64,000 nt of DNA from Aplysia californica (lineage: Eukaryota), in assembly GCF_000002075.1 (NCBI RefSeq), contig NW_004797659.1, positions 508,347 through 572,346 on the forward strand, given 5' to 3'. Shown piece after piece: positions 16,555 through 47,400 of this stretch; position 1 is the stretch's first letter; each line of letters starts with the position of its first letter. The position numbers were made by a program, and so were the translations under genes. Under the pieces are notes generated by a model. It was not told where the DNA came from and did no database searches. It saw nothing but the letters and a program-made list of their open reading frames with translations.

Positions 16555-16697
16555 CTTCTCTCCTTTGAAACATCTATCTTCCTTATCTCTCCTCCTCCTT
16601 CTTTTTTGAGTTTTCACTCTCTTGTAATACCTCTAATCTTCAGTACTGATATGACCTAATTGTGTTGCAAGTGCAGTGAAACACTTACTATAACATT
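16555..16697 (+). mobile_element. Family B copy (5' truncated)
   Basis: ctcttgtaatacctctaatcttcagtact...atgacctaattgtgttgcaagtgc. Confidence 0.8.
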
Positions 16698-16722
16698 ACT
16701 GGACTCTGGTGTGTGTTCCCAG

Positions 16723-16856
16723 ATCATCTTCCTGACCACACTGTTCTACCTGTTGGCCTCCAGTGGAAACATGTACAAACCTGCCGAGGTCTTCTCCAAC
16801 ATGAGCCCGGGCTCCACTGGCAGCAGGCTGGGTCAAGCTTTCGAAGAAGCAATCAG
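16723..16856 (+). CDS. TMEM245: TMEM245 exon 13 (exon 12 apparently missing from the assembly)
   Basis: ttcccag|ATC...AG|gtacgt; IIFLTTLFYLLASSGNMYKP...FEEAI; phase 0 to 2. Confidence 0.92.
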
Positions 16857-17533
16857 GTACGTGGTAACTAACAAGCTTAACTCTCCTGATGTGTGCGATG
16901 AAGTATTGTTTTATTTTTCAGACTTTTTAGAGTTCAGTTTTCACTGCTGGCCTCCTATTTAAAAAAAAAAAATGATGTATTAACTCATTGCTGACGCCCT
17001 GTAAGAATATTCGTATCCAGGCAGCCACCAGACTACGAGAAAATCCGAATCCCTTTTTGTCTCTATAAAACTTTCACCAGTCCATTATTTCCAAGTTTAA
17101 AAAAAACTATTCATGAGTTACCATTCTTGTATTTCCGTATGCTTATTGTCCGCTAATTTTGTAACTGTTTGGAGGGAAAGTTATTGCAATTTTAGTGTGG
17201 GTACCTTAATTTTTTAGCGTTGCTGGAGGCTGCCCAGGTGGGTGTGTCTGCTCAGGGAGGCAACTCAGGTGGAAGTGGGTTAAACAAATTAAAAGATTGA
17301 AGTACTGACAACAGCGGATTAATCGACAGCCTCAACAAAGGTCATACAATATGTTTGTGCTGATTGTTGTTAGGTTACTCCTTCATGTCAGTCTTAAGAT
17401 AATTACAAATATACCTTAATTAATGTGAATGAGCCGGTTGTGTGAACTAGATGTTACACTCATAAGAAAGCGAAAATAAATTTCTGCTTGTCAGAAAAAT
17501 GTGTGAAAGATTTGTTTGTATGTATTTCCTCAG

Positions 17534-17634
17534 TGGTGTGTTCATGGCCTCATTGAAGATGGCTTTCTTCTACGGCTTGTATACCTGGCTCATCCACCTC
17601 ATCTTTGGCCTGGATGTTGTGTTCATTCCATCAG
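17534..17634 (+). CDS. TMEM245: TMEM245 exon 14
   Basis: cctcag|T...G|gtaaag; [33 protein letters not shown]; phase 2 to 1. Confidence 0.93.
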
Positions 17635-18221
17635 GTAAAGCAACACTATTTCACTGGTGTTGGGCATAAACAGACCAAATCCAAGACTCTCCTATATTTC
17701 TTTAAAAGAATGTTTATACTTGTGTTTCCTTTGTTTCCTTCATTAGACCTTCAGCAAAGTATGCTAATATCTTGTTGGAGTCAACTCTTCATACCCCTAT
17801 CATGCACTTGTATGAAACCTTGGTGACTAAATATTTAAGGTTGCTTTCTTTCTTCTTTTTTTTTTTCTTGATGACTTAATTTGCATGAACTTTTGCCCAA
17901 CCCCTTTGATTTATTTTGTTTTTTGCAAGATGGTTCATTCTTTTAAAAAAAGTCTCGAATATTAGTCAGCATTTTTGTAGATGTCTTTTAGAACAATCCT
18001 TGCTCCCCTTTAGATGCTGAATATGTCATGCCTTTAAAAAAAGTATTGGAACACACTGTAACATAGATATTGTCAACTGTGTTTTTAGGGGATTTTGTTT
18101 TGTGTTTCATATAAAGGAGTCTTTGGTTTTGGTAAATCTCTCTTTGTGATTATCCACATTTGTTTGTCATTTTGTTTTCATTTTTGTTTTTTAAAATGTA
18201 TTTGATTTTATCATCTGTCAG

Positions 18222-18396
18222 CTCTGGCGGCCCTGTTTGCTGCCATTCCCTTCCTTGGCCCGTACTGGGCTGCCATCCCCGCTGTCATCGAACTGTGGCT
18301 GGTTCAAGGTCAAGGTCTTAACGCACTGCTATTGTTCATTGCACACATGGTCCCATCCTACGTTGTGGACACGGCTATCTACAGTGAGATCAAAGG
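18222..18396 (+). CDS. TMEM245: TMEM245 exon 15
   Basis: gtcag|CT...GG|gtgagt; [21 protein letters not shown]...[11 protein letters not shown]; phase 1 to 2. Confidence 0.93.
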
Positions 18397-18754
18397 GTGA
18401 GTAGCTTTTCGTTGTACTTTCGCGACAAAATTTCTACATATGTGGTATGCCGGGGTCTCTGGATCTTTCCCATGAAACATCTACCGTCCTTATCTCTTCT
18501 TTTTTGTTTGTGTGTTACTTTGTAGTAACACCTCTTATCTTCAGCATGTATATCTTGAGCGAGGTTAATGTTTGTTGATTTTTTTTCTCTCCTATTTCTC
18601 AACTGTAAAGCGCAGAGAGCGTGGATATGCGCTATTAAATGCAGTTATTATTATTGTTATTGTTGTTATTATAATTATTATTTTTTAAAGTAATGTTGTT
18701 ATTATTGTAAATATTATTACAATTTTAATTTTGATTATTTTTATTATCTGTCAG

Positions 18755-18912
18755 GGGCCACCCGTACGTCACTGGCTTGGCCATCGCGGGCGGGATGTAC
18801 TGCATGGGCCTGGAGGGGGCTATCATCGGCCCCATCATCCTGTGCTGTCTCATCGTGGTGGTGAATATGTACAGCGGACTGCTGCGTAACGAACCCAGCA
18901 CTCCCACTCCGG
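18755..18912 (+). CDS. TMEM245: TMEM245 exon 16
   Basis: gtcag|G...G|gtgagt; [34 protein letters not shown]; phase 2 to 1. Confidence 0.93.
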
Positions 18913-18929
18913 GTGAGTCAAGTGCATAC

Positions 18930-19300
18930 GCGTACGCACACACGTACCCATGCACACACAGACACGCGAACACACACACACATACACAGACATAAGTACA
19001 CTCTCGTATTTAGACACACACGCACATTCACACGCACGCACGCACACACACACACACACACACACACACACACACACACACACACACACAGACAGACATA
19101 AGTACTCTCACATATTCAGACACGCACGCTTACACATTAACATACACACACACACACACACACAAACACATATACACACACATAAACAAACACACACACC
19201 AAACACACACATATACACATACCCACACACATGAACACGAAAACATATTCAAAACACACAATTATAATTGACACTCATAAAAGCGCACAAACTCATGCAA
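18930..19300. repeat. (CA)n-rich microsatellite
   Basis: Seen directly. Confidence 0.95.
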
Positions 19301-44950: not shown

Positions 44951-45021
44951 CCTGTGGGGAAAAAATTAACGCACACTTAGGGAAAAAGAGTGACTATAAG
45001 CACAACAGGCAGAAACAATAT

Positions 45022-45458
45022 ATGTCACGACGCGGTGGAATCAGGCGCTTGTCCATTTTTGTTCATGTGAAGTTATACCAATAATATCATCTTAAAACTT
45101 GTTCGTTTGCCTTCCTTTTTGGTGAAAAAAATTACCATCTATGTTGAAAAGAAGTCGAAATATTTACAATTGAAGGAGGTGGGGGTCGCCTGGTTTCAGG
45201 GGTAAAATTAGTGAGAAAATGACCGCCAAAGATTAGTTATTTCCTTGATAGAGAGTCTGTAGAAACTGAAAATTAACGTTTTGTATGCCTTTAATCAATG
45301 CTTTTTAGTAAAATTCACACAGAAATGTGTTCTTAAACGGGCAAGAAAGAAAGTGGTAATCCAAAAAAATGGATAAATATTCACAAACCTGTGGAAAAAT
45401 GACAGTTTCTTCACTTTGATTATTTTGACGAGCACCTGATTTCCCCACACTGCCTCAC
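45022..45458 (-). mobile_element. MITE family A copy
   Basis: Same TIRs; flanks ATAT/GTAT. Confidence 0.85.
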
Positions 45459-45629
45459 GTATGACAAAGTGTTGCACTGAGCAGTCTATATCAACATCTC
45501 AGAAGAGAAGTACATCATGAACAAGTAGTCTCATCAGATTTTAAAAAAAAATTAAATAGAAGTTTATAATTGGTCTTAAGGTGCTCAACATCGGGTACAG
45601 AGACAGGCAGAGTGTGTTGGGAGAATGAA

Positions 45630-45790
45630 AAAGTTTAGTTGCAACACAATAAGGTCATATTAGTGCCGAAGATTAGAGGTGTTACAAGAGAGAAACAAAC
45701 ACAAAAAAGAAGGAGGGGAGATAAAGCGGATATCTGTTTAATAGGAAAGAAGAAGCAAACCACACCACAGCACCTGCCAACGACCCACAA
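45630..45790 (-). mobile_element. Family B copy
   Basis: Reverse-complement consensus, 3' end clipped. Confidence 0.8.
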
Positions 45791-46789
45791 GAATGAGAAA
45801 GAAGGCTTAAAGACTTGTTTTTATGGTATCTTTGCTTTTGAAAAAAGAAGACAGGGTGGAAATGCACTATACAGAATGATGCTATCCATTCGTATTATTT
45901 TTTTTGGAGAAAGNNNNNNNNNNNNNNNNNNNNNNNNNNNNNNNNNNNNNNNNNNNNNNNNNNNNNNNNNNNNNNNNNNNNNNNNNNNNNNNNNNNNNNN
46001 NNNNNNNNNNNNNNNNNNNNNNNNNNNNNNNNNNNNNNNNNNNNNNNNNNNNNNNNNNNNNNNNNNNNNNNNNNNNNNNNNNNNNNNNNNNNNNNNNNNN
46101 NNNNNNNNNNNNNNNNNNNNNNNNNNNNNNNNNNNNNNNNNNNNNNNNNNNNNNNNNNNNNNNAAGATCTATCTATACAACTTCCATCATGACATATTTA
46201 TGCGGACATTGCTCAGTGAGAGGGAGAAATACAGAGGGAGACATGTAAAATTTACATGGTAATCCACACCAGTAAAGATAAAAGAGCACAGCAGTTGTTA
46301 TTGATCCACGGGTCATTAAGCATAAGCCTGTGTGCATGACCGGTCACAGTAATACACTACTAACTTGACTCTTATTCATGAGCCATCAGTATGAATAAGT
46401 AAACAGCAAGAGAGAAAAGGAAAATAAATCTTTATTGACCCCGGCCAGCAGAAACATGATTACAATCACAGATACCAGGATATATAATGTCAAATAATGC
46501 CATGCTACTGCAAGTGGCTAGGGGCTCTCTTGGTCTTCAAACCAAGAAGCATGAAATAATAACTATTAAATACTGCCAATGTCATTTTTAAAATAAATAG
46601 CCTACCAGGAACTGTAGATTTTTTCACGGATTAGAGGACAAAGTAAATTATATATTATAGAAGTCAAATCTAAATGATTAATGTTGAATAATGTTCTTTG
46701 CTTCAGAAGTACAGGTCACATCAAGTGGAAAAAGTTTAAATTTTAGACAGTAAAAGTTTTAAAACGCTTGCAATGCAAAATTCACAAAT

Positions 46790-46927
46790 AGCTCATATAA
46801 GTTTCAAAGATTAAAAGTGTTAATAGAGGGTAGCATGCTAAGACAAGAAGGAGGAGAGATCAGGATAACAGATGTTTGAATAGGAAAGAAGGGACACACT
46901 ACACCAGAGCGCCCACCAACCACCCAC
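46790..46927 (-). mobile_element. Family B copy (diverged)
   Basis: accagagcgcccaccaaccacccac head. Confidence 0.7.
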
Positions 46928-47135
46928 TGTAAAAAAAGGAGTAAAAATCAGCCAACACACCAGGAGGCAGTTTTCAATCTTTAAAGTTTGGCCAACATTC
47001 ACCAGTTGTGTGGTTTATCATGTCATCTTTATCATAATCAAACCTCACATATAAAAAAAAAACTTCCCAAAACCCCCCACGAAATTACGAGTCTAACACC
47101 CCCCTCCCTTCCCCCTCCCCACCACCACCACCGAC

Positions 47136-47243
47136 CTCCTCCACAGTGCCCAGCCGTTGTGCTGGAACCTGCAGCCTCACGGCCTCAAAGATGTCAGCAC
47201 TGCCGTAGTTTGCGGCGGCCGTCTCAGAGTAGATGGAGCTGCC
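47136..47243 (-). CDS. PECR: PECR exon 6
   Basis: cttcctcag|GGC...GAG|gtcggt; GSSIYSETAAANYGSADIFEAVRLQVPAQRLGTVEE. Confidence 0.9.
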
Positions 47244-47255
47244 CTGAGGAAGACA

Positions 47256-47400
47256 GTTTTTTTTTTAGTTTTAGTAAGAGTTTACGGCACTTGCAACACA
47301 ATAAGGTCATATAAGTGCCGAAGATTAGAGGTGTTACAAGAGAGTAACAAACACAAAAAAAGAAGGAGAGGAGATAAAGACAATAGACAGATACGAACCA
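47256..47400 (-). mobile_element. Family B copy
   Basis: ttttagttttagtaagagtttacggcacttgcaacacaataaggtcatataagtgcc. Confidence 0.85.

Follow-up and report, generated by a model that had tools for sequence, protein, structure and literature searches.

A short retroposon of Aplysia californica with a branch-point-like tail and a modest excess just upstream of 3' splice sites

Why should a short repeat lie, in one gene after another, a few tens of bases upstream of an exon and in the same direction as its host? The question is raised by a 64,000-nucleotide stretch of the Aplysia californica genome (assembly GCF_000002075.1, contig NW_004797659.1, positions 508,347 to 572,346 of the forward strand), referred to here as the window, which carries a TMEM245-like gene on the plus strand, the gene PECR on the minus strand, and copies of a short retroposon that we call family B. 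An initial annotation, made from the letters of the window, described about 13 copies of family B and its long variant, always sense to the host gene, five of them ending next to a splice acceptor, and took the enrichment to be strong. Our results indicate a modest acceptor excess of family B, specific to its tail and to the sense orientation, which amounts to ~3-4-fold and is seen ~10-80 nt before the intron ends. Several repeat families in transcribed regions share the sense bias.

Family B is a non-coding retroposon of the non-LTR (non-long-terminal-repeat) type with a consensus of 178 nt, derived from an nhmmer profile that was seeded with window positions 29890-30075 and then iterated. 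Its 5' end reads GTGGGTGGTTGG, in the fuller form (G)TGGGTGGTTGGCGGGTGC, and because a G precedes 96 of the 106 full-length copies, the unit is taken to start at GTGGG. The interior consists of a C/T-rich middle and two small hairpins, and the 3' end, GTAAAACTCTTACTAAAACTAAA, leads into a tail of two to three (ACTAAA)n units. Clean target-site duplications of 9-19 bp flank 25 of 29 young, that is best-scoring, genomic copies; 5' truncation is frequent, as are head-to-tail arrays. The exact 16-mer GTAACACCTCTAATCT occurs 25,072 times in the genome, its reversed control not at all, and since 15 of 89 copies in unselected samples carry this 16-mer, the family should comprise ~150,000 fragments, or ~2% of the 927,310,431-base genome (4,332 contigs). 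At one locus (L023:1860-2410), units of ~44 nt taken from positions 34-80 of family B form a tandem array, a minisatellite born of the C/T-rich part. Family B is also abundant in transcripts, as seen in reads of polyadenylated (polyA) RNA: in two runs (X21 and X22), reads from copies elsewhere stack on both strands of window positions 47240-47376 to depths of ~620 and 425, and the PECR exons beside this interval are silent.

The acceptor excess was measured in a sample found irrespective of the repeat, namely 20 regions of 10 kb from nine myosin genes identified through the Pfam profile PF00063. They are the first 20 of a wider set of 93, drawn from genes for myosin, kinesin and SNF2 proteins; protein-kinase genes were unfit for intron sampling, as their best matches are single-exon. 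The sample holds 73 family B matches. Eight of its 45 Pfam-matched exons have the 3' end of a sense copy within 80 nt upstream, each sequence having been inspected; circular shifts gave a mean of 1.14, and none of 5000 reached eight. Under a stricter null, in which each tail is placed uniformly within its own inter-exon interval, six cases were observed against 1.80 expected (P=0.004). The layout is that of the window: tail, 11-60 nt of pyrimidine-rich sequence, AG. On the donor side of the same exons the count was 0 of 45, and antisense copies gave 1 of 45. Set against other repeat families, as the initial annotation had proposed, the excess belongs to family B: the sister families D/E and H were found at none of the 45 acceptors, and calculated per copy the figures are 8 of 45 for family B against 0 of 30 (P=0.019). 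One myosin locus (L033) contains two copies of a single exon (profile 323-376; C596:326582-326743 and 329403-329564), each with the same family B tail and acceptor. Either an exon-plus-repeat unit has been duplicated, possibly giving alternative exons, or the pair, which adjoins a gap, is a duplicate made by the assembly.

In the window, three of the five acceptor contacts stand on homology. The first belongs to a 5'-truncated copy at 16555-16694 (+; profile 36-173), with a degenerate tail that stops 26 nt short of the AG at 16721-16722; directly downstream lies the TMEM245-like exon 16723-16863 (+), recovered by tblastn with the proteins P0010 and P0012 as a match at 16711-16863. The second, also 5'-truncated, is at 47257-47384 (-), where 11 nt (CTGTCTTCCTC) separate the tail ACTAAAACTAAAAAAAAAA from the AG at 47245-47244 of the PECR exon 47133-47243 (-), which aligns with residues 197-240 of human PECR (1YXM). 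The third is a full-length copy at 44771-44951 (-), next to the PECR exon 44641-44753 (-; 1YXM residues 237-275). Its target-site duplication, ~TCCCACAGGTT and perhaps ~20 nt long, repeats the acceptor of that exon, so that the order is an unused CCCCACAG|GTT, the element, its tail, and then GTAAACTGTTCCCACAG|GTT; the duplicate of the acceptor AG lies upstream at 44953-44952, and the tail ends ~17 nt upstream of the working AG at 44755-44754. None of the copies or acceptors relied on touches an assembly gap, the nearest being the copy at 45638-45787, 126 nt from the gap that begins at 45914.

Homology lends no support to the two remaining contacts, with candidate exons starting at 19992 and 30103. 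The TMEM245-like gene comprises 12 exons between 494 and 18962, as placed by tblastn with full-length proteins that the open reading frame of the first exon had retrieved. The last supported coding exon is 18756-18962 (+; residues 786-851 of the 861-residue P0010), and since the C-termini of the full-length proteins map there, the coding region stops before either candidate. Among open reading frames of at least 90 codons between 18.7 and 44.6 kb, none is coding-like. The literal ACTAAC reported ~30 nt before 30103 is present in the sequence. With three contacts verified and an enrichment of ~3-4-fold, the effect reported by the initial annotation proved real in the independent sample and overstated in size. 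Of the five sense tails between known exons of the window genes, three have the next exon no more than 80 nt away, where the within-interval null predicts 0.23; as the window was chosen for its pattern, the weight falls on the myosin sample. Counting both sources, 11 of ~61 verified acceptors (about one in six), in eleven genes, have a family B tail within 80 nt.

The orientation of the copies is a broader matter. The strands given by the initial annotation are correct for all 13 clear copies in the window (two weak matches at 56.7-57.0 kb were also found by nhmmer), with plus copies before 30.1 kb and minus copies from 39.8 to 47.4 kb; five of the eight plus copies, from 19768 onward, nevertheless lie downstream of the TMEM245-like coding region and are not demonstrably in that gene. 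The wording 'always sense' has to be given up. In the verified coding spans of the ten genes with copies, the two window genes included and fragments merged, sense copies outnumber antisense ones by 36 to 12 (p=7e-4), and the myosin genes without the window give 29 and 12. Matches of at least 100 bits in the myosin sample are 24 to 3, so that the sense share is ~75% overall and ~90% among well-preserved copies. Within 1.5 kb of 29 young copies, 74 neighbours are co-oriented and seven opposite. In the first 2.8 Mb of one contig (C1), pairs of copies 2-30 kb apart agree in 73-78% of cases and those more than 30 kb apart in 50-56%, a loss of agreement that makes the orientation domains gene-sized.

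Nor is the sense bias special to family B. Its sister families D/E and H have the GTGGGTGGTTGG head and a large part of the family B body, agreeing with it at 115 of 134 aligned consensus positions, and end in (CAAA)n or in a longer 3' part; relative to the gene strand they score 22:2 and 39:6. A further family of ~450 bp scores ~13:3. All of these, family B included, switch strand at ~37-40 kb in the window. D/E and H lie on the plus strand at 20367-20529, 21455-21717, 26625-26737 and 32617-32757 and on the minus strand at 48594-48724, 61599-61715 and 62852-63050. The ~450-bp family follows the same strand domains, with plus copies at 1786-2006, 9267-9480 and 25290-25433 and minus copies at 43303-43521, 44179-44390, 45026-45245, 47709-47900 and 63271-63484. 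Because sister families with other tails share the bias, it is not caused by the tail of family B.

The distribution of insertions is uneven in other respects. Family B is about twice as dense in the gene samples as in the genome on average, and its acceptor-proximal density in the sampled genes is ~2 per kb, against a genome mean of ~0.05-0.1 per kb per strand. Six or seven of 29 young copies lie inside older family B copies, all of them co-oriented. Genes differ as well: one myosin gene (C413:99866-119865) has no family B match in 20 kb, and another (C479) has 17 in 20 kb. Germline expression of the host gene may lie behind such differences. The former gene also contains three alternative copies of one exon. 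The introns themselves are older than the copies, since the exon starts beside copies (profile ~28-32 and ~371-381) are common to at least five paralogous myosin genes without the repeat. They are 0.5-38 kb long. Whole-intron copies were absent: no sense 5' end falls within 80 nt of any of the 45 exon ends, the nearest being at 192 nt.

Our preferred account, held tentatively and with a probability of roughly 0.4, is that a bias at the level of insertion, combined with tolerance of the inserted copies, produces the acceptor excess. We infer that the excess arises at insertion and not through later selection, since mere tolerance gives parity and cannot produce an excess. Integration would be non-random and regional, tied to transcribed genes and prone to re-enter sites that already hold a copy, with a hot spot at the 3' ends of introns. 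Two features would let the copies persist there: the tail would put a branch-point-like ACTAA(A/C) motif 11-40 nt from the AG, and the target-site duplication would restore the polypyrimidine tract or the whole acceptor. The tail itself may be used as the branch point. A sheltering or lock-in of old copies was considered and rejected, as acceptor-adjacent and other sense copies are of the same age (median identity to the consensus 0.88 against 0.85, P=0.30).

Several observations weigh against this account, the first being the weakness of the signal genome-wide. The tail 13-mer TACTAAAACTAAA occurs 22,597 times, and the acceptor-like motif YYYYNCAG follows it 1091 times at 5-35 nt, against 890 times at 105-135 nt and 815 occurrences of the complementary motif at 5-35 nt; for the stringent YYYYYYNCAGG the counts are 125 near and 85 far. 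The near/far ratio is thus only 1.23-1.47 (z 2.8-6.3), a value that led us to reject polypyrimidine-CAG as a DNA target. Few of the motif matches are real acceptors, so that a small raw excess is compatible with the exon-based result; it corresponds to roughly 4-fold enrichment at real acceptors if introns are assumed to be 3 kb long, if 60% of the copies are taken as both genic and sense, and if the motif is present at 46% of real acceptors, and the conversion depends on all three of these assumptions. The power of the motif test is low, the test being blind where adjacency is verified: in the myosin sample it gave no excess, and a rule-based acceptor scan of the flanks, which is the same low-powered test, gave no clear one. 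The myosin sample is also small, with nine paralogous genes and five of the eight adjacent cases in two of them. By codon usage, the sequence that follows the 29 youngest copies scores at or above the 95th percentile of the controls in two cases, where 1.5 are expected, so at most one or two of these copies precede coding-scoring sequence. The 25 young-copy duplications examined bear no sequence signature that would explain a hot spot, and we know of no mechanism by which integration driven by a long interspersed element (LINE) could sense the 3' end of an intron. In the two polyA RNA runs, PECR exons have a depth of ~0-0.6 and no junctions, so that the use of its acceptors is taken from protein homology. 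Finally, a small fitness difference in a large population could yield the same 3-4-fold excess.

That last point leads to the nearest competitor, selection without any insertion bias, which we regard as possible and somewhat less probable. Insertion would be uniform in transcribed DNA; acceptor-adjacent copies would be neutral or slightly helpful through the branch point in the tail, interior sense copies slightly harmful and antisense copies more so, and a large marine population would do the sorting. The restriction of the excess to the branch-point-like tail agrees with this, as does the geometry of a working 3' splice site, with the tail 11-40 nt from the AG and only pyrimidine-rich sequence between them. 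Duplications without a sign of sequence-directed targeting and an enrichment of modest size, 3-4-fold, also fit. The account requires, however, either an added benefit or a purge of interior copies, for which there is no evidence, and under it one would not look for acceptor-adjacent copies that are no older than the others. The acceptor-proximal density of ~2 per kb, far above the genome mean, and the nesting of young copies in old ones are likewise hard to attribute to selection.

It is unlikely, in our judgement, that there is no general acceptor effect at all, and that the pattern is a by-product of dense, clustered and co-oriented copies and of the choice of a striking window, with only the sense bias holding genome-wide. 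The small raw motif excess, the two unverified acceptors among the five of the window, and the concentration of adjacent cases in a few genes speak for such a view, and four of the nine myosin genes (C413, C50, C245 and C306) have no adjacent copy. In genes sampled independently of the repeat, though, the within-interval null still leaves six cases against 1.8 (P=0.004), and the donor side, antisense copies and sister families remain at about zero. The genome-wide near excess is itself significant (z=4.5-6.3), for all the low power of the motif test; we read it as a weak signal and rely more on the exon-centred test.

Family B might also be a retroposon coupled to splicing, which propagates via the spliceosome without creating introns, by either of two routes; this seems to us rather improbable. 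By the first, its RNA, with a 5' GUGGGU pairing with U1 and a 3' UACUAAA binding SF1/U2, may be brought to the intron 3' ends of genes in transcription and integrate there. By the second, the element may act as a 'GT...branch point' module which, where its duplication repeats the acceptor (CAG|GT...tail...CAG|), is spliced out on its own as a recursive intron; after trimming to the branch point, the released lariat would be exactly the full-length element RNA that retroposes.

The initial annotation had offered two alternatives: that the element targets branch-point or 3' splice-site DNA, for example by tail microhomology during target-primed reverse transcription, or that copies are retained because the tail supplies a branch point. 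In a microhomology model, (ACUAAA)n would anneal to nicked, CTAAC-like branch points and so home the element in sense. This we consider very improbable. Of the 25 clean duplications from young copies 14 begin with A, that of the 44.9-kb copy begins TTAAT/TAAAC, 17 nt before the AG, and the tails of old copies are a frequent landing place for new ones, all of which would suit such homing. None of the 25 duplications, however, starts at YTRAY; they show a weak T/C|A preference and are 50.7% pyrimidine, and the match to the tail amounts to 1-4 A-rich bases, as for any such element, and microhomology cannot account for the sense bias of sister families with other tails. Weakest is the proposal that insertions into exons became introns in the manner of introners, the 5' end supplying GT, the tail the branch point and the duplication AG: family B does begin GTGGGT and end ACTAA(A/C), AG can stand last in a duplication, and CAG|GTT...CAG| bounds the 44.9-kb copy, but intron creation is already contradicted, and was rejected, on the exon starts shared with repeat-free paralogues and the lack of an intron-filling copy or of any sense 5' end within 80 nt of the 45 exon ends, in host introns that are kilobases long.

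The remaining copies of the window complete the picture. On the plus strand, a long variant at 5554-5808 (profile 26-146 plus 88-176) lies away from acceptors, in the TMEM245-like intron that separates the exon ending at 2431 from the one starting at 7909, and a copy without its 3' end at 18442-18546 (profile 15-124) sits in the last intron of that gene, with 210 nt between it and exon 18756. Beyond the coding region follow a full-length copy at 19768-19943, with a duplication of ~28 bp (ATGTTGGATAATAAC..CCTGTGT) and the candidate acceptor at 19991; a 5' fragment at 25232-25291 (profile 1-62); and a near full-length copy at 28634-28807, found by nhmmer 165 nt before the gap 28972-29273. An older copy at 29715-29888 (108 bits) is arranged head-to-tail with the youngest copy of the window, at 29891-30075 (175 bits), which has the duplication CGACCA(A/C)AAT and a tail ending ACTAAC before the candidate exon at 30103. 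On the minus strand, a second long variant at 39843-40166 lies downstream of the last verified PECR exon; the two long variants (5462-5808 and 39845-40166) appear as an inverted match to each other, and elsewhere in the genome the variant is seen as paired matches to profile 30-146 and 82-178. For four of the window copies the nhmmer match itself is slightly shorter than the element, at 29891-30068 (+), 39843-40070 (-), 44771-44945 (-) and 47263-47384 (-). A copy without a tail at 45638-45787 (-; profile 1-150) is in the PECR intron upstream of exon 44753, and an older full-length copy at 46736-46926 (-) is in the interior of the intron between exons 47133 and 44753. Directly before the GTGGG of the latter stands CTCCTTTTTTTACAG (46926-46950), so that CAG|TGGGT forms a junction of acceptor-like and donor-like sequence within this intron of PECR. 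The gap 45914-46163 was spanned by no contig of two contig-based runs, so this intron contains unknown sequence, and no empty allele was seen.

Regarding the host genes, open reading frames of the exons were searched singly against Pfam: those of PECR match adh_short profiles in order, and those of the TMEM245-like gene gave no match. Positions 10324-10623 and 13869-14168 form a repeat spaced by 3,545 bp, 100% identical over 300 nt, which includes the TMEM245-like exon 12039-12143 (equal to 15584-15688); it lies just before the gap 16165-16264, and an assembly duplication is likelier than biology. The intron upstream of PECR exon 2 holds the remains of a mariner-type transposase (53513-54725, -; PF01359, E=2.5e-14) together with a helix-turn-helix piece. 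A 42-bp tandem repeat at 48713-48914 (4.8 copies, 95% matching) lies within ~220 nt upstream, in the PECR sense, of exon 48318-48495.

How does family B compare with known systems? Judged by its sequence, it is a target-primed, LINE-driven short retroposon of an ordinary kind. It resembles a short interspersed element (SINE) in its size (<600 bp), its non-coding nature, its copy number, its target-site duplications and its 3' repeat tail, and lacks the RNA polymerase III head derived from tRNA, 5S or 7SL: Rfam at E<=1 gave no tRNA, 5S, 7SL, small nucleolar RNA (snoRNA) or other family for family B or its sister copies, and the fold is ordinary (z=-1.0). In view of the missing head, we class it as SINE-like, possibly of the 'LINE-promoter' kind. 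LP-SINEs are mollusc short retrotransposons with a LINE-derived 5' end and no tRNA or 5S head (Matetovici et al. 2016, PMC4758252), and they share with family B a non-tRNA head, a C/T-rich 5' part and a 3' tail of tandem repeats (PMC4758252). In Ostrea LP-SINEs the hexamer ACTAAA stands before the repeats and is taken as a variant polyA signal, and the words 'intron' and 'orientation' are absent from the text of that study (PMC4758252). The GTGGGTGGTTGG head of family B is likened to the LINE-derived 5' end of LP-SINEs by its layout. The Nin-DC and CORE SINEs of Aplysia have tRNA-derived heads (Piskurek & Jackson 2011; PMC4758252), of which Rfam finds none in family B. Promoter-less, intron-processed RNAs that retropose are described for snoRNA retroposons by Weber (2006, PMC1687206), who also discusses sense orientation, a phrase that occurs 13 times in that text. 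Their copy number is orders of magnitude lower, and family B has no snoRNA or Rfam fold. We therefore regard LP-SINEs as the closest described relatives-in-kind.

Introners, known from Micromonas, Aureococcus, dinoflagellates and others, are whole introns at new intron positions and are mostly DNA transposons. Family B is like them in being linked to splice sites and sense to the gene, and in that a target-site duplication can supply a splice site; its 5' GTGGGT and ACTAA(A/C) tail are candidate splice signals. Introners, however, are entire introns, whereas family B forms only the 3' end of old, long introns, and neither whole-intron copies nor lineage-specific intron positions were found. 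In canine narcolepsy, a SINE inserted next to an acceptor breaks splicing. Disruption by an acceptor-adjacent SINE is also described for PMEL in merle dogs (PMC7349775). Both are short retroposons tens of bases from a 3' splice site, as in family B, but the canine elements lie in reverse or shift the branch point, with mis-splicing as the result, while family B lies in sense and brings a branch-point-like tail of its own. Site-specific non-LTR retrotransposons such as R2, TRE5-A and Dada/Keno/Utopia recognise a defined gene or sequence. They have in common with family B a LINE-type integration with a rule of position and orientation; at family B insertions no defined target sequence or visible motif was found, and only a minority of copies lie at acceptors.

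Transposable elements are generally scarce around splice sites, and within introns the antisense orientation usually prevails. Family B differs on both counts, being 75-90% sense, together with its sisters, and over-represented right before acceptors. If the tails do serve as branch points, a single repeat would have remade thousands of 3' splice sites in this animal, and if the bias arises at insertion, this would be, to our knowledge, the first LINE-type integration to be linked to transcription or splicing.

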